In this document: positions 7,527 through 64,000 of the stretch, piece by piece | Layout of the letters: the number at the start of each line of letters is the position of its first letter | How positions within the stretch are numbered: position 1 is the first letter of the stretch | Source: Takakia lepidozioides | Taxonomy: Eukaryota; Plantae; Bryophyta | Reading direction: 5' to 3' | Assembly (NCBI GenBank): GCA_030704615.1 | Contig: CM060733.1 | Span: 15,314,001-15,378,000 of the forward strand | DNA length: 64,000 nt | Made by a program: the position numbers and the translations under genes | Notes under the pieces: generated by a model | Told to the model about the DNA's origin: nothing | The model's database searches: none | The model's input: only the letters and a program-made list of their open reading frames with translations

Positions 7527-7539
7527 TCACCTCCCCTCT

Positions 7540-12080: not shown

Positions 12081-12508
12081 TAATTTCAAAATTACAACAA
12101 ATATAGTTGTACAGCCTTTTTCGGGTATGCGCTATTGGTTCGTCATTTATTCATTTCACTTTTATTTCACTTTCATCCCTCTTGGATCATATATAAGGGA
12201 GGAGGGTCACCAAGCTCCTCACTTCTTCTAGCGCAAACACTTGAGGTTGTTTTGGATGTTCTCTTCCATTGAACGAGAGTGTAGCCCAAGAGGAGGGTGC
12301 ATACCTTTTGCCATTGTGACTTCCACCAAAGCCACTTCAGCAAATTGTGTATAAGTTCAACACTACAACCCACATCGACCCACTTGGGTTGCTAACAGGT
12401 ATAGAAGTGTTGGGCTATCGCATTGCACTCTACATTCACAACACGTTCATTTATAGGTGACTATTTTTTGTTGCTTGCATCGCTAAGTCTCAGGGGAGTG
12501 GATATTGG

Positions 12509-15442: not shown

Positions 15443-15716
15443 AGCAAAACAGCTGTAAGCATGCATCAGCACTTTTTAGTGGACATGTTTATATTTCTGT
15501 ACTGATATAATACCAATATGATCATTGTCACTATGAGTATTTGTATTGCTGTTGAGTATGTGTTGAAAAATAAAAGATGTTGCACATGTGTATATCAGCC
15601 AAAATGTCGGCCAAAGGCCCCGTCACTTGTTCATGTTTGTGTTCGGTGATTTACTTGTGGAATGGAGAACAATTGTGCCATGCTTCCAACTGTGCATTCA
15701 TTTTTATTTAAATGGA

Positions 15717-17030: not shown

Positions 17031-17391
17031 TCGCCCTGCACGTGGCCCGAGAAATGAGGAGGGGGAGGGATATAAGCCAAGGGAGGCTTACTCTCCTCTC
17101 ACTTCCTCTCCACACAACTTCTGTGTGCGTGACATTTCATTATTTCACGACACGTAGTCACGTGGAGAAGAAGGCCATTGGTTGGGTGGGGGGTATTTTT
17201 TGCCGCGATTTCTGTAAGGTCGTTGCAGAATGCTCCCATAGGCCCTCATGTGGTTTCCATGATCATTTTATTCTACAAAATTAGCTTTTAGGAACTATTT
17301 TCACACATACTCAAACCTATTTAACGGGGGAAGGGTTTAGAGTTACGTCTTTTTAGAAAACCTCGTTTAGTGTTGCTCCGATTGTTGTAGA

Positions 17392-19315: not shown

Positions 19316-20479
19316 ATGATGCGTACGAGGCGGCTTATCGTCGAAACGACACAATGATTAGGGACAGGGCCCGCGAGAGGCAGTTGGAAAGTTTCAAAAG
19401 TACCATCAAGACAGTTGTAGAGAAATAGAGGCGATTATGGACAGACCGTTATCATCGTGTTTCGGGGGCTGTATTGCCGGATGTGGACCATCACTGTGTT
19501 TTCCAACAATATTCAAGGTACAACAAAAATACATATTATATATGTACTACGCTGCCAGTCATTAAAAGCCTAGTCGTCACTGTCCGAGGATGTGGAATTT
19601 GATGTTGTGGCCTGATTTGCACTGCCAATTGCCAGAGCTTGCGACCGTGATCTCGTGGTCAATGAGGGGCCCAATGACATGCGATCAATTTCTGGCCTGC
19701 ATCCGCCTACTTCGCGGCGAAAGTTGACTTTCTTCTTCACTCTCACGACGTGACGGAGGTGGATCGAGAACAAGTGCTCGGGCTACATGCAAATCGGAGA
19801 AGCGTTTTTTTTCATATTTACACTCGTGTGATGGGGAAGAAGTAGTTCACCCTGTAAACAAATTTACAATGGTGTCATATTTGGTCATGACGTGTATATG
19901 GGTTTCAAGTGGCGAACATTTCCGCCATGTTGATGTGATACCATTTCACAAATATATCATATCGCATTTGTGAAAATGTATCACATGAACCGTTCCATGT
20001 GGCCTACGGGAGTCTTCGATGGGTACGAGATCAATGTGGCCTACGAGAACTGCTTCCACCAACAAACATGTGATCATTTCAGAAGTGCTAGAACTTTGAA
20101 GCGACGATAGGCAAGGTTCTTCATCCAAATGTTCAACATGTTGAGGTCTTCTGTAATGTCTATTACTTCGTAATGAGGTGCTTCTCCAACTCTTATTTTT
20201 CCAATGCTAATATCTTCGATCTGGAACATATCCACACATGCGTATATAACTTTTTTTTTTAAATGACCATCAAAACTGGAAGCTGGGGATGAGGCTCATA
20301 AAAGTTGAGATGGTCATTTGTTTTTTTAAGGATTTCTGCACACGTATGTGGATCTGTTCCAGGTGGAGCATATTAACATATTGGATAAAGTGGACATGGA
20401 GAAGCACCGCATTACGAGGCAGGAGACACTACAAAAAAAACTTCAAATGGCATACCATGTAACAGGTTCCAGTATAACC

Positions 20480-21870
20480 GAAGACGAAACCCCATTCATT
20501 CAATGGGCGATTGAATATTTGCCCATCCAAATGATTTTCGTTTGCTTTCAATCTTTGTCACTATATTCAACATACCATGTATCAGGTCCAGGACTAATAT
20601 CAGATCAATCGAAATTCATTCGATGGCTCAACGGATGGTTGGCCATCGAAATGATTTTGGTTCGCTTTGAGACTTGGCCACTATATTCAATGTGCCATGT
20701 AAGAGGCCCCAGAGTAATATGAGATCAATCGAAATTTGTTCAATGGGCCAACGGATGGTTGCCCATCCAAATGATTTTCGTTCGCTTTGAAACTTGGCGA
20801 GTGTGTTCAATGTACCCTCTGATACGTCCCAGTGTAATACGAGATCAATCAAAAATTGTTCAATTGTCCAATGAGGCGTTCACTTGTCATCTGGTTTTTG
20901 TTCAATGCGAAAAAAAAATCCTGCAATGCGTGCACGGCTATTGCACCCATTGAACGGATGTGGTTGAAGCCCCTCTTTTGCCCGCATGTGCTTGAACATG
21001 TGTGCGACACATGTGCGGAGACACAACAGACGAATAAATCATTTGCCTCCCCATCGATGCACTTCCCCCTCAAGCCATTCCACAATTTAATTGAATTTTA
21101 ATTTATTTTTAAGCCAATAAATAGGTTTGCACTGCCTTTCAGTGGGGGTTTCTGGCACGTATCGATTTTATTTTTGGCTCAATTTTGTTCTGCGGCTTCC
21201 AGCATCCCACGGCTACTCCCCCGCCAAAATTTGGACCAATAAAAAATGCCCCAAAAAAAAAATGTTCTCTTCGCTCACTATTGCAAAACTCTCTATGAAG
21301 AGTGCATGAAGTAGAACACAAATCAAGTTTGGAGTGCAAAACAGGGAAGAAACTGTGGTTTTGGGTCCAAATGAATTTTGATCGCTTCCAAATTTGACAC
21401 GCACGTTGCATATGGCTACATTACACGCCCCATTTAAAAACGGAATGAAAAAAAAATTGTGAACACGCGAAACACAGTCCAACAAGTCCCAAAGCAATAG
21501 CAGCTCCAACAAAATACATTCAACGGGTGAACGGATGGTTACCCATCCAAATCATTTTTGTTAGCTTCCAAACTTTGCCAGCACGTTCCAGACACCCTCT
21601 CACAGGTCCCGGACTAATATCAGATCAATCGAAATTCATTCGATGGCTCAACGGATGGTTGGCCATCGAAATGATTTTGGTTCGCTTTGAGACTTGGCCA
21701 CTATGTTCAATGTGCCATGTAAGAGGCCCCAGAGTAATATGAGTTCAATCGAAATTTGTTCAATGGGCCAACGGATGGTTGCCCATCCAAATCATTTTCG
21801 TTCGCTTTGAAACTTGGCGAGTGTGTTCAATGTACCCTCTGATACGTCCCAGTGTAATATGAGATCAATT
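20480..21870. repeat. 120-bp tandem units, duplicated as a block 1020 bp apart
   Basis: GATCAATCGAAATT...TTCGCTTTGA.ACTTGGC units at 20603 and 20723, repeated almost identically at 21623 and 21743. Confidence 0.85.
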
Positions 21871-23836
21871 GAAATTATTTTGTGCTTTGAGAACTTTGTG
21901 GGTATGTTCATAGAAATATCATAGATTTTGTGAAATGATTATGAAATACACAGGGACCAGGCAAAATTTGTTTGGACCCGGACCGTTCGTAACTCGTTAT
22001 AATTTATTTATTAACATCAATTTTCCTTGTTCTCCAGCTTTCGGAGTTTTCGAAGGTCATTCTCTGGACTATTTAACTGACAGTGTCAATCCACTCATAG
22101 CTATCTACAGGATACATATCAAAATTGAGAATTTTCACAGCACTGATTGTACTTGGCTAGCGTCTGTGTTGTAATCACTGAGTCTACGCAAGCAATCAGG
22201 TGTGACCATGACTAGGGATCAGCTTAGCTCAAAAGTTCGTGGGAAGAAGCTGCAGCCCTCACTTACATCAAAGTACATTCACGGCCAAGAATATTTTGGG
22301 TTTAGGAGCACCCCATCGCCGACAAATGCACCATCCTCTTAGCGAAAAATCTGGTTTCCGTGCTTTCAATACCCACGAGCTTTGCACCCTCGGCCCTTCA
22401 TAAATATAGGCACCAAATAAATATAGGCATAGTACACTCTTCATTAAAAAGAGAAAAAAAGAAAATGCGGCACGCCAACTGAAGAAAATCGCCAAGGCCG
22501 ATTGCAGCAGAATTCCCAAATCTCATTTTCCCATTTTCTCGTCATTCTCCAGCACCACCTGTGACCATCAACACCACCAGCTCACGTCTCCTCATCGAAG
22601 TCCACCCCATGGTACCTGCGATGACATCAACAATCAACTGCCAAAAAACCGGATCACAACGGCTGGGATTCCTCCTCGTTGGTCTGAATTTGGACAAAGA
22701 ATTGCGAATCTAGGCTTGAAAGTAGAGATTTTTCTTTGATGAACCGGATGTTGCAGGCTGCAGTCTGCAGTCTGCAGCTCAGTCACTACCAAACCCTAAA
22801 GACTTCCTTCAGTTCTCTTCCTCTTTTTTTGAGAGCGGTACAGGTCGTTGTGACTGTTTCTTTATGTAGCATTGGAAAAATTGTTATATGCTCTGTACTT
22901 CCGAATTCCGTATCAGCCACCAGGGACATGAAACCAAGAACTTCGCACAAAATCTCCAATTCATTCAATTTATGGTGGGCCATGGTTACAGCCTGCAAGC
23001 TGGCCGGGGTGGCTGATACGTCCGTTTAAACATGACAGTCTCAGAGGCCACAGAATTCAGCTAGAGGAACAACAATAGCATGAAACACCTTACCGTAAAT
23101 ATGCTTGTTGACATTGGTTGTGACAGCTCCAATCAATAGAGAACTCGCACCATCAGTTGCGCTCCAACAGCAGTACCGGTCCCCCGAGTAAATAAAATTC
23201 CGTTGTAAATAATAAATTGCATACGCTCGAACCTCACAAATGTCATTTCAACAAAACCGGCCGTGTATTGTGGCACTGTTTGTAACTGCAAATGTTTCAA
23301 TGTTTCTGACAGGGTATTGAGAAAATGATATATTGGATCCATATGAATTAGACAACAAACATTCCATATCTCATTCAACTGTGCGATACTACCATGAGTG
23401 ACATGGATAAAAAAGTAATAGGTGTACATGTGACCTCCGCACGTTTAAGTAGAGACCTAGTATCAAACGTTCGGAGGTCGCATGTGTACCTATTACTTTC
23501 CGATCTATGCCTCTCATGGTAGTGTCGCACAGTTGAATGAAAGGAGACGTTTGTTGTCTAATTCCTACGAAACTAATACATCGTTTTCTCATAACCCTAT
23601 CCGAAACCTTGGAACATTACAAATATAAACAGTGAGCCAGTACACAAACAATTTATGTTGCGATGACATGTGTTAGGGTCGAGCATATGCAATGTAGTAT
23701 TTACAATGAGACTTTATTTATTACATGCACGATCAAAATTGAGTTATGTCTTCATAAAAGAACCATTGTACCGCCAGAAATCTCATATCTACGAGACTAT
23801 GGTATACTCCGTCCTATATACGTCTTTCGGCTCAGG

Positions 23837-25238
23837 CTAATTGAATGGCTTGCCCATGAACCAAAGTACTACATAGGCTAATGTGACTCTCTCATTCTTG
23901 TTGTTGTCGTACAACCTTTGTAGCATTGAATGCCAACAACCTCCCGTAAATTGGTCCTGGAACATATTTTGATCATAATGAGTGCCGCCATTTATTCGTA
24001 CCGCTATCTTTCCAATGGCAAAGGCCTCTGACGTCATGTCCTTTGGGGGGGAGGGGGGGGGGGGGTGACATTCGCATTAAAACCGATGCAATATCTTTTT
24101 TCACCCACCATCTTTTCGCGAGTTCCCGGTCCAGCTTGTCTTGGTTTTCAAACTGGTACGGCGAGGCTTTGCGTATGCCCAATGGGGTGGCTAAGCCCCA
24201 ATCACACACCCCAATCTTGATCTCCTCGGTGCCATCTGGAAAATGCAACAAGATGTTGTCGGGGGACAAGTCGTTGTGCAGGACACCGTTCTTGTGGACA
24301 ACATCCATGATGCACACCAGTACCCATACAAGTTTACTGCGCACTTTCCCGAAGCAAGCGATCGCATTCCTGGAACTTTGTTTCCGTTCCCCTTTGTTCC
24401 AAAATCACCATGTTATCCGAATCGTTGCCCCATTTTCTGTCAAGGTTCATCATGTCACGTATTGTCCCCCCATTCCACCAGCGAGTGTAACCATCTACCT
24501 CACGTGCATTCACAGCAAAATACAAGATAACACCCGGATGCTGGAACTTTACTGCCAAACACTCGTTGTTATGTTGTCTCAACGCATTTTCTGGATTTTT
24601 GGACTTGGGTTTTTTTCCCGCTAGCTCCCAACGCTCCGGTATTCTAGAATTGCCAACAATCCTACAGTGACGGACCTTAGCATACCCTTCTTCTTTGTAA
24701 GGGCCAATCTCTACCACTTTCGCAGTAGAGTTCAGGTAATAAAGACCAGTTGTGCCTCCCCCGCCCGATGACCCTGCCTTCCAAGGGACAACCCTAGTCC
24801 GGCGATGTGAGTTCTGACTTGCCGATCAAGCCCAATACTCAACAAGCCGCATTAACTCAGCTTCGGCGGAGGGCACTCGACCCTCGGCCTCAAATTCCAC
24901 GTGGCGTCTTTCGCCCTGCTTTGGATCCACCGATTGAACTTCGGTTTGTCCCTGTCTGCCATCCACTTGGCCCCTGCCAAAGCGTTTGTCAATTTCCTCT
25001 CCATATTTTGCTGAAAAATCTGAAACCCCTCCCATCCATGCCTAACATAAGCACTCTCCAGCCTCATCATGTCCCTACCCTTGAAATAATCTGCTACCAC
25101 TTCTTTCACCCTATCCAAGGCATCCGGTCCCAGGTAGTTTGGCTTGTTGACCTGGCTATCCCGTTCGTGGGCACGTTTTCTCTTCCTCCGCCCCCCAGAC
25201 GATCCCGCCCCAGAACTTGAATTCACAACCCCCGACAT
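23837..25238 (-). pseudogene. Cargo gene: atypical protein kinase (HND / DWG motifs), frameshifted
   Basis: Gly-loop region YKEEGYAKV, ELAGKKPK, alphaC NNECLAV, HPGVI, catalytic loop VLHNDLSPDNILL, IGVCDWGLAT, SEAFAIG. N-terminal RRKRKR. TATATAAA at 25571-25564. Confidence 0.85.
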
Positions 25239-25680
25239 TGTATAAACCTTTGCCCAGTACAGGGTCCAAAACCTCAGAAAAATGGCAATGAACGTGTGTG
25301 GATGATGTCTTCGTAGTTTTCTGCAAAAAAACAGGCCGCCGGAGATCCGGAAACGGCAAAATGGTGATACGATGATTGTACCGTGAACAAGTGTGTGGGA
25401 CTGACCAATAGAAAACCAACAAAACCTCCCCCCCCCCCCCGAAATAATCACCTTTGCACCTCCCGTTGGCAGTGCCAAGCAACGAAGTCCGAAAGGACTA
25501 CATGATGCCAAGGAACCGCACCACAAGAGGGGCAAAAGTGATCAGAAAATGAGGGGGGAATGGTTTATATAGGCGCCCACTAGCCCGCCCCTCCCAAAAT
25601 GACATTATGCTTGAAAAGGCGCGACAGGCCAGTGGCGTTGAAACGTGGCGCGACTGGCCAGTTGCACCTCGCCACGCGCG

Positions 25681-26150
25681 ACTGACCAATATGGGCGGTC
25701 GCTTCATTTATAAATAAATAAATTACGGACGACCGCCAATATGGGCGGTCGCTTCATTTAAAAATAAATAAATTACGGGCGACCGCCAATATTGGAGGTC
25801 GCTTCGTTTATAAATAAATAAATTACGGGCGACCGCCAATATTGGAGGTCGCTTCATTTATAAATAAATAAATTACGGGCGACCGCCTATATGGGCGGTC
25901 GCTTCATTTAAAAATAAATAAATTACGGACGACCGCCAATATGGGCAGTCGCTTCATTTAAAAATAAATAAATTACCGGCGACCGCCAATATGCGCGGTC
26001 GCTTCATTTAAAAATAAATAAATTACCGGCGACCGCCAATACTGGCGGTCGCTTAATTTAACAAAATATTAAATTACAAGCGACCGCCAATATGGGCGGT
26101 CGTTTTTATTAAAAATAATAAATTATATGCGACCGCCAATATAGGCGGAC
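25681..26150. repeat. Right subterminal array: ~9 tandem 50-bp units
   Basis: GACCGCCAATATGGGCGGTCGCTTCATTTAAAAATAAATAAATTACGGGC recurs at 25731, 25781, 25831, 25881, 25931, 25981 and 26031. Confidence 0.93.
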
Positions 26151-26335
26151 TCATTTTTTTAGAAGAATTAATAAATATTAATAATTGGTCACGTCTATTT
26201 TACACCGTGGCTACCATGTCAGTACAAAGGGTAGAAGTAAATCGTAAAAGTCAAATATAAAAAAATATTACATGGATAAACGTCCGGATTCGACGTGACA
26301 TGACGCACGTCAGGAATGATAACTAGGATCAAAAC

Positions 26336-40999: not shown

Positions 41000-43900
41000 G
41001 AGGATGATGCCCGTCAAGTGTTTGACAAAGTGGTTCGTGGACTGTATCGATGGCAGGTTATGCTCAACATGGGTGTCATAAGGAGGCTTTCCATATCTTC
41101 AGTCAGATGATACAGGAAGGGGTGAAGCCCAACAAGGGTATTCATTTGCGTCCTCAATGCTTCCAAGGGCGAAGAGGTCCATGCAGACATCGTCGAAGCT
41201 GGTTTCGTTCCATATATCATGCTGGAGACTGCTCTTACTGATGTGTATGCAAAACGCAATAGCATAGAGGAGGCACGCCGTCTGTTTAGGGTTTACATTT
41301 GCAGATTATGAGTACACCGCCATAGCTCTCGCTGCTGGAATTTGCACGATGGTGGGACAAAGCAATCGCAACGTGTGGCTTTTTCTTAATGTACGAAGTC
41401 AAGAAGTTTGTCCATCCTGCAAATGTGGGCTTTGGCTCCTGTTACTACCATGATTTGGTATTCTTCCTAATGCTTACAAGGTGCTTGGGAGTGTCAGCTT
41501 GGTCTTTGCAGGCCGTGTTTCAATCTCTGCCTGCTCAGTTGCACCGTGGTGGTTCGTACAGACCAAACCGACATTACCTGACTACAGACACAAGCAGCAC
41601 ACACAAGAGGTCCACACACAAGAGGTCCGTTTGGGTTCATGGTCAGTCAAATCCTCCATGGGTCATGACACAAGGTCGAGGACAATGTGAGGGCACCTTC
41701 TTCTTCGACCTATTTCAGCCTGTTTTGCCCTCTCATCAGTTTCGGCCCTGAATTTGCCGTACGGAGCAGAGCTGGCATGAGTTTCTTCACGATGGTGGGA
41801 CAATCGCAATCGCAAGGTGTTGCTTTTTCTTAATATAGGATGTGAAGAAGTTTGTCCATCCTGCAAATGTGGGCTTTTGGCTCCTGTTAGTACCATGCTG
41901 TGGTATTCTTTCCGATGTTTACAAGGTTCTTGGGAGAGTCAGCTTGGTCTTAGCAGGCCGTGTTTCAATCTCTGCTCGCTCAGCTGCACCGTGGTGGTTT
42001 TCACGTACCAATCCGACATTACCTGACTGTACAGACACAAGCAGCACACACCAGAGGTCCTTTTGGGTTGGTGATCGGTCATAACCTCCATGGGTCATGA
42101 CACAAGGTCAAGTTCACAATGTGGTGAGGGCGCCTTCTTCTTCAACCTATTTCTGCCCCCTTTGTCCTCTCATCAGACGTCCCTGAATGTTTGGTGATAA
42201 AGCCCTAGTTTGTCTTTTGCTCTTTTAACTCTATAGTAAAATTATCAGATGGAGGAGGGTCAGAGACAGCTGAAGGAGCAGGGATAGAGAGTGGGTCCAG
42301 ATTCATCCAAGAGGGCAAGATTTCAAGCACTATGATTCCCTGTGGATCCATTGCTACAAGAAACCTGCATGGGTAGATGGTAAACTGGAAGCTGCAGCAG
42401 CAGCAGCACAATTGAGAAAATTAGGCACTGCTAATGAAGGCAACCTTCTTCAACACCTTTCACCCTGTTTTTCCCTCTTATCAAAATCGGCCCTAATTTT
42501 TCATGTTGAATTCTGCAAGTTACTGGTTGAGTGAACCTTTGATAGTTTGCAATGCGTGTGCAAGCCTGGCAGCTCTGGAGAAGGGCAAAGAGGTCCATGG
42601 CGACATTGTCAGAGCTGCAATTGTACCACATGTCATTCTGAACAATACCCTTGTGGAAATGTATGAAGGGAGTGTTCGACAGCTCTGGGAAAGGGGAAAG
42701 AGGTCCATGGTGACATCGTCAAAGCTGAAATTGTACCAGATGTCATCCTGAACACTGCCCTGGTGGACATGTTTGCCAAATGTGGGTGCATTCAGGATGC
42801 GAAGGGAGTTTTCCACACTCTGGCTGAACGAGATGTGGTGTCGTGCAACGCGATGCTTGCAGGGTATGCACAGCAGGGGCACGGGATGGAGGCTTTGGAG
42901 ACCTATGAGCAAATGATTGGGGAAGGGTGAAGCCCGACCACATCAGGTTTGTGTACGTTTGCAGTGAGTGTGCAAGCCTGGCAGCCCTGGAAAAGGGCAA
43001 AGAGGTGCATGGTTGCATCGCCAAAGCTGGAATTGTACCAGATGTGATTCCCTGTGGATCAATAGCTACAAGAAACCTGCATGGGTGGATGGTCAACTAA
43101 AGGCTGCAGCTGCAGCGGCACAGTTGATAAAACCAGGCACCTCAACCATGGCCACAGCTTCTGAAAGAGGATCAAGAGAGGGAGTCCACAACGCCTCTTC
43201 TGGCACTTCTTGGCATGTGAAGATGCTTTGCGGCAGGCAGACTGACAGTGGCTCTACAGACTTTAAACCAATGAGGCATTTCAGCAGATTCAGGTACGTA
43301 TGTCTGTCTCTTGCTTAAGTGCATCAAGATGGAAGGTCTGGAAGCTGGAAAGCAGGTGCACACTCACATAATCCAAAGTGGATTCACGCCAAATGTTTTT
43401 CTATTCAACACCCTTGTCTCCATGTATGTTAAGTGCGGGAGCATCATGGATGCTCACCAGTGTTCAACAGAATGCCTCAACGATCTTTGATCACGTGGAA
43501 TATAATGTTGGCAGGAGTTACTAAGCATGGGTGTGGTAGGAATGCTTTGGAGACCTATGAGCAACTGCTGCGCGAAGGGGTGAAGCCCAACCACATCACA
43601 TTTGTTTGTAATGCGTGTGCAAGCCTGGGAGCTCTGGAAAAGGGCAAAGAGGTCCATGGTGACATCGTCAAATCTGGAATTGTACCCGATGTCATTCTGA
43701 ACACTGCCCTGGTGGACTGCATGTATGCCAAATGTGGGTGCATCGAGGATGCAAAGGGAGTGTTCGACAGTATGGCTGAACGAGATGTGGTGTCCTGGAG
43801 TGCGATGATTGCAGGATATGCACGGCAAGGGCGCGGGATGGAGGCTTTGGAGACCTATGAGCAATGATGCGGGAAGGGGTGATTCCCTGTGGAAAGATAG

Positions 43901-44650
43901 CTACAAGAAACCTGCATGGGTAGATGGTCAACTGGAAGCCACAGCAGCAGCGGCACAATTGATAAGATCGGGCACTGCTAATCAAGGCACCTTCTTCAAC
44001 ACATTTCACTCTGTTTTCCCCTCTTATCAGAATCGCCCTAAATTTTCATGTTGAATTCTGCAAGTTAGCTGGTTGGGTGAACCTTTGATAGTTTGGAGTG
44101 ACTTTGACATGATACTGCCAAAGTGACAATAGGAAAGTATCCAGAAATAGGTAACAGAGAGGAGAAGCTGTGGAATGAATGCTTTTCTGACCCCAGTCAA
44201 TGGTGGAACAACCATCTTGGAAGGTAAATGCCTTTGGATTACAGAGAGTGGCAGATGCAATTGAGAAAAGGAACTGGTGTGATAAGTTCAGTTGGGTGTT
44301 TGCTGGAACAAATATAGGCTGCCATTGTCAGCTGCTAACAACAATGCAAGGATGTTTGCATGATCTGTGCAGAGGCATGGATAGCTAAAGGAGCAGGCAT
44401 AGAGTGTCATCCAAGAGGGCAGGATTTCAAGTTCCATATTACTTATGATTCCCTGTGGAAGGATAGCTACATGGGTAGATGGTCATGGGTAGATGGTAGA
44501 TAGTTTGGAGTGATTTTGACATGATACTGCAAAAGTGACAATAGGAAAGTATCCAGAAACAGGTAACAGAGATGAGGAGAAGCTGTGGAATGAATGCTTT
44601 TCTGACCCCAGTCAAGGGTGGGACAACCGAGGGAAAAAGGTGAATGCCTA
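41000..44650 (+). pseudogene. Scrambled cluster of PDF-motif/PLS-PPR gene fragments
   Basis: P-L-S repeats (VKPNHITFVC..ACASLGALEKGKEVHGDIV; VILNTALVDMYAKCG; VVSWSAMIAGYA) interleaved with PDF half-motifs (WWDNRNRK; LWNECFSDPSQWW; PRGQDFKH..YDSLW...KKPAWV). Many stops and frameshifts. Confidence 0.88.
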
Positions 44651-46300
44651 TTAGATTACAGAGAGTAGGAGACGCAATTCAGCATAGACACTAAGGCAAA
44701 CTCTCCTTCCCAGCAAGGGTTTTATTTTGGTATCTGAGCGATTAAATATAATTTCTAAGAACATAATTTCAGTATGTTGTTATTTAATAATGTTCTCATC
44801 AAGGCCACTGTCCAGTGTCAATGTCCATATTCAGTGTCCATGTTCAGTGTCCATGTCGATGTCCAGTGTCCATGTTCCCTATAATAATAATAATAATAAT
44901 AATAAAATTAAATCCATTAACATTCACACTTAATATTGGAAATCAATTAATAATTAATTAATACATACCCTCACACAGGAACGAACACGTGTTGCATAAT
45001 GACTTGTCGAAGGTGTGAAATCTGCTAACGAAGAAACTATCTCTACAAAAGTGTATTGTCAAATGTGGGATTGAAGGGGAATCATGGAAGCTCCTTGTTG
45101 GACGTTTCATCAGCAATATTAACATGCTTCCTTCATCAAAGAGAACCCGATTGTATAAACGGGCTGGTGTAATCCCCTTTGCAGTTGAGTCACTGGGATT
45201 TGCAACATGTTCATGGCCCCTCTGACCTGTTTCTGTCACGAACTGCCAAAGATCTGCAAACAAAGTAAATTCTTTGAGCGCCAGTATGGTTTGTCATTCG
45301 CTTGTGTTTCATCCCTCAGTGGCACCTGCTGAGGGAATTTGACACTATAAAATCTAAACATAGTATCGGTGCAGAATGATTTCTGTTAGTTGTCAAGTCT
45401 CTAAGGCGGACATTAAGGGCAGTTTGTGTAGAGATTTCAAGTTTGACCAGAAGCAAATCCAGATCTCAAGCTAGAGCTGAAGCCTGAGTTGACAGATGTG
45501 TAGGTGACAGAAGAGCCTTTGCCACTAGGGTCGGGTGAAGTGACGGCTTACTAGAAGAGAAAACCGGTTTTTCCATGGCTTTTTCCACACTTTTTGCTGT
45601 GGAAAAGTCCACACCTGCTGTGGGTGTAAGGAGCGACTAGTCCTTTTGGACACGCCGTGGACGGCTTGGCATCTCGGGTGGCCATGCGGAAAAGTCCACG
45701 GGTGGAAAAACCCTTTGAAGTCCATGGGTGGCCTTTTTCACGGGGTGCATGGTGACATGGCCGCGCTGGCATAGCTGACATGGCAGAGTGTGAAAAAGAT
45801 CTATTTGAGAGCTTATCATTTGGCTGCTTTCATTACTGCAGGAAAGGATAAGTGGAGAGCACTGGTTCCTTCTAACCCGCATTTATACTACTGCGTGTTG
45901 TCTGGAAGTAGTTCTCCAAAACTATTTTAGTGAGAAACTGATACTCTAGACAGTTTAAGACCTTCACTCTTTACATTAACAAGAATTTACGGTTGCTGCT
46001 TCATTTTCTGTAGACAGCCATGGTGCATATGCCTCTTGCACGAGAAAATACGGAAGGCAAATTGACGATAGCAGACATGTGGGGCATAAAGCTCATGCAG
46101 ACATTTTCTTTTATATCACAGATATCATGTTCTGGTTGTCAACACTCCCAAATTGCGTTTACAAAACTGAACACTGCAAGGTACCGAGCCAGTTGACACA
46201 CACCCTTGGGTGTATTCGGATTAAAACGTCAAAAATCTTATTCTATTACAAGAATCTGAACCTAGGCCGATACAGTTGTCACCTTAGCCGGCATCTACTT

Positions 46301-47232
46301 TCAAGGCTTGTGCACGATGAATCCTGCGCATTGCACCTGCCTAACGTTGTCGAATCCGAGCACGCGGATGTAGGCGGTGGGGTACTCCTTCTTGCACAAC
46401 TCGATCTCATTCAACACTGATGAAGAATCAGTGCACCCGAACATGGGCAGCTTCCACATAGTCCAGTAACGACCATCATAGTATCCTGGTGACCGGTTGT
46501 TGGTGCGGCTGATGAGCCCGTCCTGACCCAAACAAGACGGTGGCTGGTGTTAAACATAATTTTGGGAAAGGATTAGTCGAATGAATCTAGAGCCACTGGA
46601 GGAAACCCTCCCACATTAGCAGGAAAATCGGTTTCACTGTTCGGAAGTCATCATGAACACTAGAGTGAAGTGTGCGCGACAAGTAAATCTTACCAAGTCA
46701 AACTCAAGGCAGGGGATCCACCCTTTGGCAATCATGTAATCAATCTCCTTAGAGATAGCCTCCGGGCTCAATGGTGGCAAGTAGGATAGGGTCTCGAACT
46801 TCAAGTTGCCCTCAGGCCTCCACACCTGCATACATCATCCCCAGCACCCCCCTTAGTCGACATACACCAGCATTACTCAAAATGCAGTGACTGCTCCAAC
46901 ATCCCCCCGAGCTTCATCACCGCACCAGCCCCAAGTCAAGCCCACCAAACACGGCAGAAGAAAACCACACCACCACCACCACTACCACCATCACAGGAAG
47001 GACCCAACAACAATCTACTACGGAAGAGGCCACAGACCAGCATGCATCCCAGGCGGCTTCCGTTCTGCACGGTCTTGGAGCTCAAATCCGCGCTCTTGCT
47101 AGAGAACACATTGGCACCCTTGAGGCCGGTGAAGGCGCGCACTGTCGCAGTCTGCGAGGAGGAAGCGCTTGGGCTGGCAGCAGCGAAGGCCACTGGGGAC
47201 ACCACGGCGGAAGCTGACACCATGGAAGCCAT
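46301..47232 (-). CDS. rbcS: Rubisco small subunit with transit peptide (exons 47232-47038, 46825-46694, 46522-46301; 182 aa)
   Basis: MASMVSAS... transit peptide; [11 protein letters not shown]; [19 protein letters not shown]; two phase-0 GT-AG introns give an intact frame. Confidence 0.98.
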
Positions 47233-48994: not shown

Positions 48995-51900
48995 TTACCA
49001 TACGCTTAACATTTTCAGACCTGTTTGTCGTTTCATGCTGAATGCTGGAGAACGGAACATTATGTAGATGGGCACCATAAACCGTACCACGAAGTACATG
49101 CTCACCATCCCACCAAATAGCCCGGCAGTTGTCATGTATTTCTGCCACTTCATACCTGTAGGCATCACTGCTATCCCAGCAGCCGTAAATGCACCAAGGG
49201 CAAAAACAACTGCAATCACCATTAGGAGTGAGGCATAGCAAAGTGAATACTGAGCATCGTTTACTGCTTCTTTGATGAACTTGCCCTGCACTGGTAGTAC
49301 TCCGCAAGCACCTGATATAACTGATGCCATGCTGAAGAAGAAGGACAAGCTGTTGAACACCCAGAAGGCACGAACACTGTTGTATTTCTCAATTGCTGCG
49401 AAGGCAAGATAGGTGTCAGGAGGAGCTGGTTCCCCCAATTGGAACTGATAATGGTTGGACACACAAGACAATGTACAATTCAGTGCGAGGCTTTTGGTGG
49501 GCAGAATGACACCAGAGTTGGTAGTTTGTTTGGGGTCTTCATCATTTTCCTAGTGCTTTTGCCTGTTCGTGAGGCAAAGATCAGGAGACATTGAGCTACA
49601 AGCTTTCAAGGGTGCCTTTCATGACTAAAACTGTAGCTAGAGGTGCCGCTTTTGAGCTTCACCCACCAAGCATGGACAAAATGGAACCTACTAAGCCACG
49701 TTTGCTTTCTATATCTGCAGCCAACATGATCAAAAAGTTACCTAAATGCTTTTGTGATGCTCACAAAGGTGAGAATTGCAGCTCTACTGATATGAGATAT
49801 ATTATATAAAACATTATGCAATGATCGTGCATATTGGTTATCAGGCTTAGCAAGCTGCCATCAGCATAGCGGTACCTGGGCATGGTAGGAAGAGACGAAA
49901 CCCAAGGGTGGTTGCACCCAACCGTTGTAAGTTATTGTTGCAATTAGGGCAGCTCCAACCAAGATTGCATTAGCTGCCTCCACAAAAAGCTGTCTGTCTC
50001 GGTATAACACCTTCAAATAGCCCCTCACGTCAGATCTGTCCGTCAGTAGCTTCTCAACATCTCGCCAGTTGATTTGTATTATCCCTTCTAGTGGGTTCTT
50101 ATCCTCTAATAAGTCTTTCATACCTGTCCGTCGCCAACTATCCGCTGTTTCATTTTTTTCTGCAGCTATCTGCACAGCTGTGCGCCCATTGGTATCCTCC
50201 TCATTAGCACTGAGGTTCTTCTCTTCAACAAGTAGCCTCACCACCTCTACGTGTCCAAACTTTGCAGCACAGTGCAGGGGTGTAAAGCTCTCAAATTCAC
50301 CCACAGCGTTGATGTCTACACCTGGTTGTCTTAGTAGCAATTGGACCAAATAGGCACTCCCCTTGCTTGCCGCCCAATGTAGAAGTGTGGAGGAGCGAAT
50401 GGCATCAAGTTTCCACATGAGGTTCTCCCGCCCTGACTCTGAATTCAACTTCAATGTGTGTATAAACTTGATGTCAAACTTTGAGAAAGTATTGACTCTC
50501 GGCATGCATATGAGGAGAAGCTTAAACACTTCGATGAGCCGGAATGAGTCCTCCCACTTCCGTTCCTGTAGGCGTTGGATCACAACATCTAATGCTGTTT
50601 GGTCATCAGCATTCTGAGCTGCTATATCCAAGAACTGCAAGAGCTTCACCACTGTTTCACTGTGGCCCTGAACTGCAGCCATATGTAATGGTGTGGATCT
50701 CTCAGTCACTTCAGCAGTCACATCAGATAAATCAGGCCGTGGCAGGAGCTCAGAAGCCAGGCCAAATGGAAATACTAAATTCTTTGCAGTAGTGGCTTTT
50801 GTAACCAATGGGACTATTTGACCTTTCAGCACAACTGGTCCCCAGAAATACTCATATACAAGTAGTTCTACAACCTCAGTGTGCCCTTCTCTAGCAGCAA
50901 TATGCAAAGGGAGGAGTCCATCCAGGTCAGCAGCATTGACATGGGTGTCGTTCCATTCCAGCAGTTCTGTGACTGTCAATACTCGACCCTGCTTTGCTGC
51001 ATAATGCAAAGGGGTGCGCCCAACACAATCTCTAGCATTTACTGGACCAGGTTGTTGTAATGCTTTTTCTAAGTCTTGGAACCTGAGCAATCTCGAATCC
51101 CTTTCGTGATTAATATACTTCATAGCACGCTTGTCACCAAGATTTACCCCGTACTGTAGAGATCTCCCAGGCTTCCGTCTCTCATGCTCTTCCAGGATCA
51201 AATGCACTACTGTATCATGCCCCCTGTCTGCAGCCATATGCAGAGCTGTGAAATCTTCCATAGTTTGTGCATCTAAATCTGTTTCTGGGTCTGCCAGAAG
51301 GAGGTTCACAACTTCTTCCTTACCTTCCCATGAAGCCAAGTGGAGAGGGGTGAAACCTCTTACGGCCCACTTGGCCCTTGCCTCTGCTATGGTCTCTGAT
51401 GTCATTCCTTTGGGTTCCACAAACTTCTCCCTTGCCTTGGCATTCACATCAACATAAGGCCCAGGTGTAGGAGCACTAACCAAACCAATCTCAGGTTTGA
51501 TCCTGACATGGAGGGAGAGAGAGTTAGAATTGCTGTGGACTCCATCATGCATTGTCCATGACAGTATGACAAGTTTGTCCAGTGCCAATATCTCTCGAGT
51601 CATTGCTTTGTTTGCTACATTGTTTGTACCCCACAAGCCTGTGAATGGTATGAAGTTCCATCTGTTCTTTCTTGCAGTCTCTCTTTCCTTTGTCACATGT
51701 AAATGTTGGTTCACGTTTTGAATTAATTCTAGTACCCTCAATCTCAATAATGGGACAACATTCACTAGGAGTTGCATGCTGATTGTCACCCTCCATCAAG
51801 GTAATAGCAAGTGCCCTAACAGTTACTTCTTTCGCCACTCTTCGGTCTCTCATTCCAATGGTCAACATGTTATAAGTCTAGATGAGCCCCTAACCACTGT

Positions 51901-52567
51901 CACAATACAAAGCTGCAGACAACAAAGTTTCCAATGAAAAGTCGAAACCATCAATCTGAGCTCTTTTTAAAGTCCCATTTAGTACATCTCATTGGCACAC
52001 TGTGGGGGACATCCTGTACCTAGACAGGGTTGCTGTAAATTACCCTTGTGCAATGTCAGCCACAGGCCCATTTGGAACAGCACCTAGTTGAGTAATGCTT
52101 GGAGCATCTTTGCTGAAGCTGCTCCCTACAGTGGCTCCATTTGCATCTGTGCCCATCTCAGTTCCAATTTTGACCGGCACGGACTGGGAAGATTCAAGGC
52201 TTGGGACGATCGATCCAGACCCTCGAGATCCAATCTCGATGCGGCCTGGATCCATCCTCTTCGGCCTTGTTGCCAGGAGGACCTCCACCACAGGGGCGTG
52301 CCCATGCCAAGCCGCTACATGGAGGGGAGTGCGTCCAAGCTGATCAAGTGCCACGTACGGTTTGACCGCTGGCTGCTGCAACAGCAGCTTCACAATCTCC
52401 ACATCTCCATTGTGTACCGCTACATGGAAGGGGCTTCTTCCATCGGGCCCTGCTGCAACTGGATCGGTGTTGGGTTGAGTCAAGATGTAGACGACGTTCT
52501 TTATTTTCCCATTTTGAACTGCTTCATACAAAGCTGTGGACATCGTCTCTCTGAACACTTTGGACAT
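48995..52567 (-). CDS. Ankyrin-repeat transmembrane (PGG-domain, ACD6/ITN1-like) protein, ~866 aa (exons 52567-52044, 51502-49876, 49444-48995)
   Basis: Multiple TPLH/TALH ankyrin repeats; ANAILVGAALIATITYNGWVQPPLG; FWVFNSLSFFFS and four TM helices. The predicted splice phases (2, 0) keep the frame open. Confidence 0.85.
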
Positions 52568-54052
52568 TTTTGACTGTGTCACCTCTTTTTCCGCGGAGTC
52601 AAGTGCTGGAGCTTGTCTTCAAGCGACTGTTTTCACATGAGCACAGCTGACGAGTTGACATTCCTCAGCGTCTCAGAGACACTTAGGGGTCTTTGTCTTG
52701 GATAATCAGTACAAGCATTTGCAAGTGATGGGCTTTGTTTCCTTACGATTCCTTGCCTATGCATCCATCCCAAGTGGTCATGGGAGTGATGGCTACCACA
52801 GCGGCATAAGGAAGGCTCTTTGTAGCAGTGGGTACATTGATCGCTCTTCCTTGGTTTGTTTGACCTTGTCACTATTTTTTCTTTCTCTTCTTCTTCATCT
52901 TCTACAGGGAGGCGTCACAGGCTCTGGGACGGGTTAACACTAGAGAGTTGTTCCTTCCAAATTACTGACCTACAGATACAACACTATAGATGAATATTCT
53001 CCTGCATTCCTCAAAGCTTGGGATTTTCTTCGTGGAGTAGTACGCAATTGATTAGGCTTTTTTTTAATTATATGATCACACTGTAGCCCACTAATTCACA
53101 ATCACAAGTAGAGCTCTCTCAACCGTGCGGACTGATAAGAATTCTATAGGATCCTATGTTTATGGTGCAATGGGAGTATCCGAGTAAGCCCAGCAATATG
53201 ACTTGTAAAACCGACTTTCTTGGGCACCATAATCTCTCTCAAGTGGACACCTCTGGTGAGTGCAAAGGATTTCTGTTGAAGAATGCGAAACAACATGGAG
53301 TGGCACCTGACATGCACGAGAAGAAGCATGACTAGAGCCATGTCCACTACTCCATGATGAAACTGACGCTGGGCATGGTGCAGCCACATTGTGGTTAGCT
53401 CCGCAGGATCTTCACAGGGAGACAGTCCCATAACCGCAGCTTGGTGGTTACTGCGTTGTGAGTCATTCACACAAAATTATACTCACTTGTTAGCAGGCCT
53501 ATTTTCTTGTGTTGTGCGGATAAATAGATTATTGCTTATCCTCCGGAGGTAAGGGTAAATAAAAACTCGAAGATTATTTATCCTCCAAGTAAGGATAGAC
53601 TATTATTATTTTTTAATTATTTGTATGTCCACTTATTTATCCTACAGGCAAGCATACTATAAAGAAAATTGGATGATTTATTTATCCTCTGAAATCATCA
53701 AGGTGAAAACTCTACACCTTGGGTACAGAATTGAGCACTCAAGAATTGTGAAATGTCAAATTTAGTAACACAAATCTTGTCTCCAATTCCCGCACTCTCA
53801 CATCCCCTCATATTGAAGACTAGCTTGAGCAGTGCCGGCAACCCTAGTAGTTGAGAGTGCTCCCCCTACAACTAAGAAAAAGTAGAATAAAGTTTGGATT
53901 TAGAGATTTTTAAGTTTTCAAGAATACATTTCAAAATAAATATGGGAACGAATTTCTAAAGTATTCAATTTTTTTTGTTTTTTGACAAAGTATTCAGTTG
54001 AAATGAGTAAATAAAAATGAAAGTAAGTAAAAGTTGTGTTAAAATGCTTTAA

Positions 54053-58590: not shown

Positions 58591-59416
58591 ATTTATGCTT
58601 CCTTTGGAAGATATATATTATATAAATGATTTATCCTTTATAAGGGTAAGGATAAACCAAAACATTTATCCATCTGAGAGGTGAAGATAAATAACAAGGC
58701 CAAGCATTAGATGGGCCTGGAGTGGAATGCGAGGGGCCGGTTCCGCCATCGTGGACCCCCCCACCCATGCCCAACCCCCGCTCCAACGCTTGCACACCGC
58801 GGGGCTGCTGCCGCGTGGCACTCCCTCCCGCGCCTCATGTTCCCGCTTCCAGGACATGAGACGTGCCCTCTCCAGCATTCCCATCCCTCCTCCCATCCTG
58901 CCCTCATGCACGGCATCGCCCTCCATCCCCCCTGCATGCCTTCATCTTCCCCATGCTACATGGCATCCCAAGCATACATCATGCCCTCTTTCAAAAATCA
59001 TTCTGACATCTATTCAAATTTCAAATGGCAAATCTGAAGAAAGAATGGACGTTGGGATATATGCCATATCGTCACATACACTCCAAACCCTAATCCAGGG
59101 TTCTACTACCCTCATCGTGCATTTCCTTGTACAGTAGTTCTCTCCATGCCTTCCAAACGCGTCCCCACCCTGGCACTCTGCGTTCACCTTCCATATTGAA
59201 TTGTGTTTGTATAATGTTGCCCACATGAACATGTTGCATTGCATTGTAAGTTGCAATCATGTGGATGTCTGGCCCACATGAAGAAGTTTGTGCTTGCATA
59301 GGGTCCAATTGTTGTCTGATGCATGAATTTCCATTGCAGCTATACATGCCCACAATCTGCCAGCACCATGTGGTTGAATCTATGGTTGCCCAGGGGCCCA
59401 CAGGTGGTTTTCACAG

Positions 59417-60490
59417 AGAAGTCCAAGATCACCAGACTTCAGACATAAGTGCGCAAAGGAGGCACGTTGGATAGCAGGTTGGTTGAACCCTCCTTGGGTG
59501 AAAGCAGAGCTGGCTGCCATGATACAAGGTCTAGCACAGTGTGGTGATGCAAGGACACTATGTATGGCAGGGCGACTGAAAGACGCGGTGCACATTTTGA
59601 ACCGGCCAAGAAATTTCGGCAGACTCCGACACATACGTCCTTCTCTTGCAGGAGTGCATCAACATGCAAGGCCTAGAAGAAGGAAAGCAGATGCATGCCC
59701 ACATTATCCGAACTCGGTTCAAGCCAAAAGTCTTCTTACTTAACACCCTTATGAACATGTACACCAAGTGCAGGAGCGTGCTGGATGCACGGCAAGTGTT
59801 TGACAACATGCCTAAACGAGTGATATTTACCTGGAATATAATGATAGCAGGATATGCCAATTATGGATGCGGGAGGGAGGCAATTGAGATGTATGAGCAA
59901 ATGATGCAGGAAGGGACAACACCCAATAAGGTGACATTCATATGCATTGGCAAAGTCTGTGCCTGTCTAGCATCCCTGGAGAAGGGCAAAGGGGTCCATG
60001 CCGACATTATCAGAGCTGGGATTGCACCAGATGTGATTCTGGAGACTACCCTTGTTGACATGTATGCCGAATGTGGGAGCATGCAGTATGGCGTCAAGTG
60101 TTCGATACTTATACTCATCATGGGTGTTGTATGGAGGCTTTTGAGATGTATGAGCAAATGATATAGGAAGAGGTGACTCCGGACAAAATAGCTTTCATTT
60201 GCGTTCTCAGGGTGTGTGGCAGCCTGGCAACCCTGGAGAAGGGCAAAGAGGTTCATGCTAACATTATCAAATGTGGAATTCCATCGGATATCATCCTGGA
60301 GACTGCCCTCACAAACATGTACGCCAAATGTGGGAACATGAAGGATGCGCTTGAAGTGTTTGACAACATGGCTGAGCGTGATGCTGTGTCATGGAGCTCT
60401 ATGATTGCAGGATATGCTCAGAATCACTGTGGTAGGGAGGCTTTTGGCATCTATGACCACATGATCAAGGAAGGTGTGGCACCAAACAAG
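59417..60490 (+). pseudogene. PDF-motif plus PLS-PPR gene, truncated
   Basis: After the AG acceptor at 59415-59416 the frame reads RSPRSPDFRHKCAKEARWIAGWLNPPWVKAELAAM...RTLCMAGRLKDAVHIL, then L-S-P repeats with frameshifts. Confidence 0.88.
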
Positions 60491-61010
60491 TCACATTGCC
60501 ATGAATTCTACAGGCACCAAGCAAGGCCCCCCACACTGAAGCACCTGATTTGATAGGCATTATGTTGGCAAACTCCTCCGCATCAACCAATATTCCCGCA
60601 CGCGCAAAAAGGTCCACCATGCGGCCAGAATGCTCCACTGTAGGAGCAAGGCCATGAACTTGATTCATGTAATCAAAGTAGTGACAACCCTCATCCACTC
60701 GGCTTACATGGCTACATGCAGAGAGAACACAAATAAAGGTGACACTATTTGGCTTCAACCCTATAGTTGAAGGGCCTCCCTGGCACAACCATGCTGACCA
60801 CATCCTACAATCACCGCATTCCATGAAACCACATTCCGTTGAGTTATATTGTCAAACAGTTGAATGGCATCCTCCATGCTCCCACATTTTGCATAATGTT
60901 ATCAAGGGCAGTGTCCAGAATGACATCTGCTAGGATTCCAACTTTGATTATCTCAGCATGCGGTTCTTTGCCCTTTTCCAGGCTTGCAAGGCTGGCACAA
61001 GCATTGAGAA
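60491..61010 (-). pseudogene. PLS-PPR C-terminal fragment (L2-S2-E1), fused tail-to-tail to the previous gene
   Basis: KPNSVTFICVLSACSH...HSGRMVDLFARAG...VWGALLGACRIHGNV. Confidence 0.85.
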
Positions 61011-61299
61011 GTTTCATGCAAGTTGGAGCAACTTTGGGATGAATGAACCGTCATGGATGAAGGTTAAAAGTTATCATGCTATGAATGAAAACACATACAG
61101 AAAGTATGAGTGCATATGTGCATATAGACTAAGTGCCTGTACAAGGGAATGATTCCATTAGTCATGAATGGTATCATGAAACCATAAGAGTGTAATACCA
61201 TTCCCATCCCGAATGGAAGGAATGCATGCATGCAAGGTTTGAGATGGAAGTTGGACCCAATTTGAAGAAAATATGGATATGCACTCTGTTGCATTCATG

Positions 61300-63960
61300 A
61301 AATTTCTAGGGCGTCCTAGGGGTCGTGCTGATGAGCCCAAAACCAATGGCTAGCTTCTCACTTTGGTGATAAAGAGAAAATTCTTTTTGCTCCTCTACCA
61401 CATCATGCAGTACAAAGCGTGTGTCAGGCACATACCCCGCCTCCTTCACCTGCCCAGACAATCTTCTCAGCTAAGCATGGATTTCCTTAATTCTTGGATG
61501 CAATTTGTCATCTACAACAAAGGTGTGCGCCCTGTTGCCAACCTCAATGCAGCAGCGACCTGGCTCCTTCCTAACCCCTCTGACCTTCATCATTTTTCTC
61601 ACCTTTGCACTATCATCCCCGCCTCCTTTATCTGCCCAACCAATCTTCTCAGCTAAGCATGGATTTCCTTAATTCTTGGATGCAGTTTGTCATCTACAAC
61701 AAAGGTGTGCGCCCTGTTGTCAACCTCAATGCAGCAGCGACCTGGCTCCTTCCTAACCCCTCTGACCTTCATCATTTTTCTCACCTTTGCACTATCATCC
61801 TCGCCTCCTTCATCTGCCTAACCAATCTTCTCAGCTAAGCATGGATTTTCTTAATTCTGGGATGTAGTTTGTCATCTACAACAAAGGTGTGCGCCCTGTT
61901 GCCAACCTCAATGCAGCAGCGACCTGGCTCCTTTGTAACCCCTCTGACCTTCATCATTTTTCTCACATTTGCACTATCATCCCACCTGCCAGCTGCAGCA
62001 TGGATGTTTGATAACAACACATAAGTCGCGACATCTTGTTCATCCCACTTGAGAATAGATGTTGCAACACGTTCAACCATCTCCACATTGCCATGGATTC
62101 TGCAGGCACCAAGCAAGGCCCTCCAAACCATAGCATTTGGTTTCATTGGCATTTTGTTAATGAGCTCCTCTGCCTCATCCAATTCCCTATATGTCCAAGA
62201 AGGTCCACCATGCAGCCAAAGTGCTTTACTGTCGGAGAGACACCATGATCTTGACTCAGGGAATCAAAGTAGCGTCTTCCTTCATCCAGTAGGCCAGTGT
62301 GGCTGCATATAGAGAGAACACATATAAAGGTGATATTGTCCAGCTTCAAGCCTTTTGTTTGCATTCCTTCAAATAGTTGCAGGGCTTCTCTATGAAACCA
62401 TGTTGGGCATATCCTGCAATCATAGCATTCCAGGACGCCACATCTCGTTCGACCATATTGTTGAACACTCCCTTTGCATCCTCCATGCTCCCACATTTGG
62501 CATACATGTCCACGAGGGCATTGTTCAGAGTGACATTTGGTACAATACCAGCTATGACGATGTCACCATGGACCTCTTTGTCCTTTTCCAAGGCTGGCAG
62601 GCTTGCACATGCATTGCAAACACAAACAAACGTGATGTGGTTGGGCTTCACCTCTTCCTGCATCATTTGCTCATATGTCTGCAAAGCCTTAGTCTCGCGC
62701 CCCTGCTGTGCATATCCTGTAATCATTGCATTCCACGACACCACCTCACGTTCAGCCATAGTGTCGAACACTCCATTTGAATCTTCAATGCTCCCACATT
62801 TGGCATACATGTCAAGAGATGCCAAGCTTGCACATGCCTTGCAAACACAAACAAACATGATGCGGTCAGACTTCACCCCTTCCCACATCATCTGCTCAAA
62901 GGTCTCCAAAGCCTCCATCCCGCGTCCTTGCATATCCTGCAATCATCATGTTCCATGACACCACATTTTGTTCAGCCATATTGTCGAACAACCCCTGTGC
63001 ATCTTCAATGCTCCCACATTTGGCATACATGTCCACCAGGGCAGTGTTCAGAATGACGTCTGGTACTATTCCAGTTTTGACGATATCACCATGGACCTCT
63101 TTGCCCTTTTCCAAGGCTTCCACGCTCGCACACGCAGTGCAAATGCAAACAAACGTGATATGGTTGGGCTTCACCCCTCCGCGCATCATTTGCGCGCATC
63201 ATAGGTCTCCAAAGCCTCCATCCCACAGTGCATATCCTGCGATCATCGCGTTCCATGACACCACATTTCGTTCAGCCATGTTGTCGAACACTCCCTCTGC
63301 ATCTTCAATACTCCCACATTTGGCATACATATCCAACAAGGCAGTGTTCAGAATGACATCTGGTACCATTCCAGATCTGACAATGTCACCATGGACCTCT
63401 TTGCCCTTTTCCAAGGCTGCCAGGCTCGCACACACATTGCAAACGCAAACAAACGTGATGTGGTTGGGCTTCACCTCTTCCTCCATCATTTGTTCATATG
63501 TCTCCAAAGCCTCGATACCACGCCCCTACTCTGCATATCCATATCCTGCGATCAGTCTGATGAGAGGGCAAATCAGGCTGAAATAGATTGAACAAGAAGG
63601 TTCCCTCACCACATTGTCCTTGACTTTGTGTCATGACTGATGGAGGATTCAACCGACCATCAACCCAAAAGGACCTCTTGTATACGCTGTTTGTGTCCAT
63701 GGTGGGGTAATGTCCAATTGGTCTGCAAGAACCACCACGGTGCAGCTAAGCAGCCATAGATTGAAACACGACCTCCTAAGACCAAGTTGACCCTCCTAAG
63801 CACCTTGTAAACACCAAAGAAAAATACCAAATCGTGATACTAACAGGAAGAGCCAAACTTCTTCACCTCATACATTAAGAGAAAGCCACACCTTGCGATT
63901 ACGGTTGTCCCACCATTGTGAAGGATCTTTAAAGAACTCATGCCAACTCCACTCCGTGCT
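61300..63960 (-). pseudogene. PDF-motif / PLS-PPR / E1-E2 / truncated DYW RNA-editing-factor pseudogene
   Basis: EWSWHEFFKDPSQWWDNRNRK, intron 63891-63723, second PDF half, ~4 near-identical PLS triplets, L2-S2, E1 (VWRALLGACRIHGN), E2 (YVLLSNIHAAAGRW), PG box, [14 protein letters not shown]...[12 protein letters not shown], then truncated. Confidence 0.92.
61437..61983. repeat. Three tandem 182-bp copies of the E2 / PG-box segment
   Basis: CTCAGCTAAGCATGGATT recurs at 61466, 61648 and 61830. Confidence 0.92.
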
Positions 63961-64000
63961 CCAAGGTAGACTTTTGTGCCCGAAAATTCGGCAGCATCAA

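Follow-up and report, generated by a model that had tools for sequence, protein, structure and literature searches.

A decayed PLS-type PPR gene carrying an OSB-type PDF motif in Takakia lepidozioides, and its intact relatives in other seedless plants

An exon starting at position 59417 of a stretch of Takakia lepidozioides DNA of 64,000 nucleotides, analysed as a whole and hereafter called the window (GCA_030704615.1, contig CM060733.1), appears to join a motif known from OSB proteins to the repeats of a PPR editing factor. Is the join genuine, is the gene still functional, and what could such a motif do in an editor? The window is land-plant nuclear DNA (44% GC) hosting transposons, and PPR debris is found in two clusters, at 41-44.7 kb and at 59.4-64 kb. 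Gypsy-like integrase/RT remains (7500-10600, minus strand) and a hAT-like transposase region with kinase-like cargo (10700-26300) are located elsewhere in the same DNA. The 59417 locus is organized as follows.

59369 to 59416, plus strand: 3' end of an intron splitting the PDF motif, with a pyrimidine run and an acceptor CAG ending at 59416
59417 to 59521, plus strand: 3' half of an OSB-type PDF motif, starting at the intron in phase 0 (hmm 19-54, E 6.6e-10)
59522 to 59605, plus strand: short linker and first PPR half-helix of the LCxxGRL type, in frame with the PDF exon
59602 to 59607 (about 59606), plus strand: frameshift, caused by a single additional base in the PPR frame
59607 to 60485, plus strand: decayed PPR array of the PLS type, amounting to some two and a half L-S-P triplets
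60486 to 61025, minus strand: inverted PPR/E-motif fragment, which adjoins and ends the plus-strand array

The first-pass annotation had claimed that the exon encodes a PDF piece running in frame into a first PPR helix, and this is correct. The frame is open from 59417 to 59605, spanning the PDF half (signature PDF-x-H-K ... W ... P-P-W-V, followed by the end helix), a linker of 12 residues and a first half-helix of the same type as that of Diphasiastrum PDF-PLS proteins. Likeness of the preceding intron to those of other window copies is limited to the last ~45 nt. Pfam PPR matches at 59601-60158 and 60167-60550 identify a P/L/S array, which in alignment is ~45% identical to Diphasiastrum PLS proteins. 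The reading frame is not intact, being interrupted by the frameshift at ~59606, by a second break at ~60090 (within ~60090-60125) and by a TAG stop at 60164-60166, and the array ends at ~60485 where the inverted fragment begins. Neither E nor DYW motifs are found on the plus strand of the locus; their only remains are on the opposite strand, and broken. The 5' PDF exon (W..FF.DP..WWDNR) is present in five copies in the window, but nhmmer detects none between 44.7 kb and 63.8 kb, hence none upstream of the 59417 exon past 44.7 kb, and the locus therefore has half a PDF. The proposal that this is a working gene is not sustained, as the array is broken and truncated, and E, DYW and the 5' PDF exon are all missing. 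Judged from its sequence, the 59417 locus is a pseudogene of a PDF-carrying PLS/PPR-DYW editor family.

Other PDF and PPR pieces were identified in both clusters.

41329 to 42430, plus strand: scrambled PDF exon pairs (41329-41670 and 41755-42100) and a PDF tail (42320-42430), amid PPR debris
43046 to 43500, plus strand: second copy named in the first-pass annotation, a PDF reduced to its final third, followed by a linker, an LCxxGRL helix with a frameshift and disrupted PLS repeats
43880 to 44645, plus strand: further PDF pieces, namely a tail (43880-43945), two 5' PDF exons (44158-44224 and 44567-44643) and a degraded 3' half (~44410-44490)
61280 to 63963, minus strand: second decayed PDF-PLS-E-E+-DYW gene, with many breaks

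The copy at 43047-43500 had been said to show the same join. The order of the parts is indeed the same, but only the last third of the motif is present (hmm 35-56, 14.9 bits), and a frameshift between 'VKMLC' and 'AGRL', with a stop immediately after, leaves no in-frame join. This copy adjoins PPR debris, and its array runs on to ~43878. The pieces at 43880-44645 are the remains of a multi-PDF front end. The minus-strand relic is more complete: a 5' PDF exon (63963-63892), an intron of ~165 nt and a degraded 3' PDF exon from ~63727 are followed by a frameshifted PLS array, an E motif, a triplicated E+ segment and a truncated DYW, so that from 63963 to 61280 the full order of split PDF, PLS, E, E+ and partial DYW can be read. 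Every PDF or PPR piece in the window is broken.

The E+ segment of the minus-strand relic is contained in a 182-bp unit present three times at 61435-61983 (95% identity), which is a recent tandem triplication. Four PDF tails (42333, 43045, 43880, 44446) start at the same few bases, and at least two of them (43045, 43880) directly adjoin PPR-coding sequence. This suggests that PDF and PPR pieces have been scrambled by local duplication and microhomology joins.

Breaks of this kind might be errors of the assembly, in which case the 59417 locus could be intact and expressed. Between the two PPR clusters, however, lies an intact three-exon gene for the Rubisco small subunit (rbcS, 46270-47230, minus strand), which served as a control of assembly quality. 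Since its exons are intact, the breaks at the PPR loci look like decay, and general assembly noise was rejected as their cause. A 644-codon ankyrin-repeat frame with a weak PGG domain (49864-51795, minus strand) is open as well; more ankyrin-like frame follows at 52043-52618. Sequencing reads were also searched, contigs being compared at 85% likeness and taken as evidence of presence only. None of the runs on record as RNA contain the 59417 stretch. In X7, which like X8 was labelled RNA by guess, 28 contigs continue to the left of 59416 as an exon ending S-Q-W-W-D-N-R-x-x-K, and therefore paralogous transcripts splice a 5' PDF exon onto this acceptor position. Two RNA-like contigs of ~97% identity (X7 record 22, X8 record 30) lack one base, relative to the window, somewhere over the span of the first frameshift. 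They favour an intact gene, and are also what would be expected of an in-frame sibling. DNA contigs at 59683-60015 reach about five times the single-copy depth, so near-identical paralogues exist and account for the ~97% contigs. RNA-like cover of 58672-59339 is absent in both X7 and X8. Given in addition at least three breaks, the truncation by the inverted fragment and the missing 5' PDF exon, an intact and expressed 59417 gene is very improbable.

The identity of the motif, whose full length is ~50 aa with a W..D.R, PDF.H, LW and P.W signature, was assessed with a profile restricted to OSB proteins. Its 16 PDF motifs were taken from eight proteins with a Pfam SSB domain and no PPRs, one of which is named OSB3 at NCBI. 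Of the 2709 six-frame peptides that the window yields, the 59417 exon is the best match (E 6.6e-10), scoring 37.5 bits, while none of 2000 shuffles exceeds 8.9; as the OSB proteins in the profile were found using the exon as query, this test is not fully independent, and the intron evidence is. An intron in phase 0 is located inside the PDF, after WWD(N/H)RxxK, in three OSB loci bearing an OB fold (L004, L006, L007), and an intron at identical position and phase is found in the Sphagnum-type PDF-PPR loci L001 and L003 and in the window copies. A chance motif was rejected because of the shuffles and the shared intron. Fused motifs of relatives score 65-82 bits on the OSB profile, and keep the aromatic and basic residues as in OSB. 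The shared gene structure indicates that the PDF of the 59417 locus and that of OSB proteins descend from a common ancestor. True OSBs have an SSB/OB-fold domain; none was found in PDF-PPR proteins or in the scanned window pieces.

The AlphaFold2 model of the PDF module is compact (helix, three short strands, helix; pLDDT 90), and matches OSB and PPR-DYW clusters of the ESM Atlas with TM 0.83-0.89 (0.89 for the OSB shape). A joint PDF and PPR model of the Sphagnum/Calypogeia subtype reaches pLDDT 93 and pTM 0.78, and its PPR part matches PPR-DYW structures. Profile, intron and predicted fold thus all bear out the earlier assignment of the motif to the OSB type. Among solved structures, the PDF gives no profile match, and its model has a best Z of 2.8 against the PDB and no Foldseek match, which does not prove a new fold. 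Two hypothetical phage (Uroviricota) protein clusters of the ESM Atlas also match the PDF model (TM 0.75 and 0.66). A phage origin of the PDF, suggested by these shapes, was rejected, as sequence support is absent in PHROGs and phage genomes. A homologue search with the window PDF exon returned no candidate of 67-212 aa, longer kin falling outside that range.

Three kinds of proteins were retrieved using the 64-residue exon piece as query: OSBs, PDF-only arrays, and proteins in which PDF is associated with PLS repeats. Named intact fusions come from Diphasiastrum complanatum, several Sphagnum species and the liverwort Calypogeia fissa, and PDF-PPR proteins were found also in the ferns Adiantum and Pteridium. 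No seed-plant source appears among the named fusion matches, in a search that was not exhaustive for seed plants. Two subtypes can be distinguished. In one (Sphagnum, Calypogeia, some Diphasiastrum proteins) the PDF lies almost directly on the P motif/helix, with a conserved short linker. In the other, to which the window copies belong, a variable linker of 16-53 residues is followed by the LCxxGRL helix. A search for the latter yielded 97 new Diphasiastrum-type clusters, all 97 carrying a PDF, present once in 72, twice in 19 and three times in 6, and N-terminal to the PPRs in all but one. An HxE, CxxC and DYW end is found in 29 of the 97, two thirds of the models lacking DYW. Several PDF-bearing relatives, among which P0135, P0140 and P0142, have E/E+ and DYW with HxE and CxxC. 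N-termini of the relatives are rich in Arg, Ser and Ala, resembling targeting peptides.

Spliced and genomic forms were compared in 83 loci from metagenome contigs, retrieved by the PDF pattern, among which they pair at 97-100% identity. L012 corresponds to L016 without introns, and has a frame of 648 residues from the PDF to the DYW end; L011/L052, L020/L066 and L013/L059 are similarly paired. At least one intact paralog thus carries PDF and PPR in the same frame. A chance chimera of pseudogene pieces was rejected, because intact spliced relatives exist. The expanded family of editing factors with a PDF module, proposed from the window alone, is genuine: it is made of PDF and PLS(-E-DYW) proteins, and other seedless plants have members that are intact and spliced.

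For 21 distinct paralogues, dN/dS on the PDF was calculated as 0.136 (3' half) and 0.125 (5' half, which is outside the retrieval pattern used for these loci), and as 0.25-0.30 on the linker and PPR codons next to the PDF; these are rough counts, with pS at ~0.6, near synonymous saturation, pairs that are non-independent and loci selected by the PDF pattern. The PDF motif is under purifying selection (dN/dS ~0.13), stronger than that on the adjoining PPR codons.

Intronless PDF-PPR copies are located on genomic contigs of 37-149 kb in Sphagnum-type metagenomes (L019, L025, L031, L038), and are likely retrocopies that kept the PDF. They are consistent with retroposition in these lineages, by which PPR expansions in these plants mostly occurred (PMC13386178). 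A PDF tree contains a clade of 14 fused motifs from liverwort, moss and lycophyte (support 99/96). A single origin and the donor are not shown by this tree, because its 64 columns are too short and five changes of the 'PPR-fused' label are needed. The shared phase-0 intron points to exon shuffling from an OSB-type gene. Very probably, the PDF was acquired from such a gene by exon shuffling before the mosses/liverworts-vascular split, and spread by duplication and retroposition.

PDF-like repeats were found also outside the fusions. Three dinoflagellate-type proteins, P0002 (Effrenium voratum), P0063 and P0074, have 7-10 tandem repeats without OB fold or PPR. The motif has been described as confined to green plants in a review (PMC4166229). 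These proteins, from a lineage with its own RNA editing, are candidate organelle single-strand binders. P0012 of Kingdonia uniflora is OSB-like, with ~11 PDF motifs before a putative OB-fold region, an inverted order that may be a gene-model artefact.

What the PDF does in intact editors can be approached by analogy. The RNA stretch read by a PPR array lies upstream of the edited C, and first contact with it is made at the 5' end, by N-terminal PPRs (PMC13324415); many PPRs are nucleoid-associated (PMC10226603). As reviewed, the PDF of AtOSB1 is sufficient for ssDNA binding (PMC6963530). The PDF modules, one to three in number, follow the targeting peptide and precede the first PPR repeat, and would act as a grip of low specificity where the 5' end of the target RNA first engages. 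By keeping the editor bound to single strands, either in the nucleoid or along the nascent transcript, they would favour capture and loading, while the PPR code would select the site and the DYW domain would deaminate C to U in RNA. The 59417 copy would be debris of a birth-and-death process in the family. Overall, we regard as probable that the locus belongs, as a pseudogenised copy, to an old seedless-plant family of PLS editors with one to three OSB-derived PDFs, whose intact members grip single strands; for the grip at the loading end, taken by itself, the analogy tips the balance slightly in favour. OSB proteins prefer ssDNA over RNA, according to a review (PMC4166229), a preference easier to reconcile with a DNA tether than with capture of RNA. 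Editors of the Physcomitrium PPR56 type are active alone in E. coli and in vitro (PMC10226603), and the PDF is therefore not required for editing.

The same features can be read otherwise. The PDF may not bind nucleic acids at all, and be a protein-interaction or structural module, such as an N-terminal cap, an oligomeriser, or a docking site for OSB or editosome partners standing in for MORFs. MORFs are restricted to seed plants (PMC13386178), AtOSB2 is reviewed as a tetramer (PMC6963530), and the short, conserved linker and the confident joint model (pLDDT 93, pTM 0.78) of the Sphagnum/Calypogeia subtype would suit a part of this sort. The variable linker of 16-53 aa in the other subtype and the presence of one to three motif copies, as in an avidity module, would not, and the aromatic and basic residues kept as in OSB (65-82 bits) also speak for a nucleic-acid binder; an interaction module is thus unlikely. 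The motif might instead be a functionless passenger, which entered a PPR gene once together with OSB organelle-targeting exons and was copied along. OSB genes do supply a targeting peptide and the same intron, many family members in the window are decayed, and editors work without a PDF. Such a passenger is hard to reconcile with PDF codons more constrained than PPR codons in the 21 paralogues (dN/dS 0.125-0.136) and with a motif near-perfect across liverwort, moss and lycophyte; it is already disfavoured, and we think it most improbable.

The first-pass annotation also suggested that the deaminase might be directed to ssDNA. In such a reading the PDF would steer PPR-DYW proteins to R-loops or to replication and recombination intermediates of organelle DNA, for C-to-U DNA deamination or genome surveillance. 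The preference of the OSB PDF for ssDNA (PMC4166229, a review), the ability of designer PPRs to bind ssDNA (Spahr 2018, as cited in PMC9508816) and the intact DYW kept in many fusions are in its favour. Positive evidence was not found, however, and a literature search returned none for DNA deamination; the PDF and the DYW active site are far apart, at opposite ends of the array, the family has expanded in lineages where PLS RNA-editing factors abound, and two thirds of the Diphasiastrum models lack DYW. This use of the motif is to be considered extremely improbable. A broader proposal, of which ssDNA deamination would be the extreme form, is that the OSB-derived PDF anchors a large class of seedless-plant editors to ssDNA at transcribing nucleoids, coupling editing to transcription and genome maintenance and filling part of the MORF role. 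It is put forward as a speculation, and a rather doubtful one.

Much is known about PPR-DYW editors, which also serve as programmable tools for editing RNA. Even so, a conserved module, N-terminal in the products of ~100 genes of a single lycophyte and of many genes of Sphagnum and of a liverwort, seems to have been overlooked, seemingly because Pfam has no model for the PDF. In agreement with the first-pass annotation, which knew of no characterisation of this architecture, a search of mostly open-access literature combining PDF, OSB or DUF731 with PPR or DYW found no description of the fusion, and OSB or PDF fusions are not mentioned in the reviews consulted or in a 2026 kingdom-wide survey of editing-factor fusions. 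The parts are known; the PDF-PPR architecture appears undescribed. If the PDF binds single strands, organelle DNA maintenance, represented by OSB, would be linked to RNA editing. Through the fusion, the place and time of editing (at the nucleoid, on nascent RNA) become testable, as does the loading of editors without MORFs, and synthetic PPR editors could be extended with the motif as a small add-on. The 59417 locus is a relic; the interest lies in the family, and intact members are the better material.

Among known systems, the closest are PLS-class PPR editing factors (E, E+ and DYW types, such as Physcomitrium PPR56 and PPR65). The family shares with them the P-L-S array, N-terminal peptides resembling targeting peptides and an expansion by dispersed duplication and retroposition, and its intact relatives also possess E/E+ and a DYW in which HxE and CxxC are present; it differs in the one to three PDFs placed before the first repeat, and the 59417 copy in being broken and devoid of E/DYW. 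OSB proteins (AtOSB1-4) have an SSB-like OB fold and one to three C-terminal PDF motifs. The likeness extends to the PDF sequence, to the fold predicted for it and to the intron in phase 0 by which the motif is split. In the fusions, in contrast, the OB fold is missing, the PDF is N-terminal and joined to a PPR array, and ssDNA binding, demonstrated for AtOSB1 and AtOSB2 (PMC6963530, PMC4166229), is putative. RRM-PPR proteins, the MORF-RRM of ORRM1, PPR-SMR and PPR-NYN similarly combine a general nucleic-acid-binding or helper domain with PPR repeats that read sequence. Fusions of the RRM-DYW/E kind occur sporadically (PMC13386178); PDF-PLS proteins, in contrast, form large families, with ~100 clusters in one lycophyte, and, unlike in the other PPR fusions, the added module comes from a DNA-maintenance protein.
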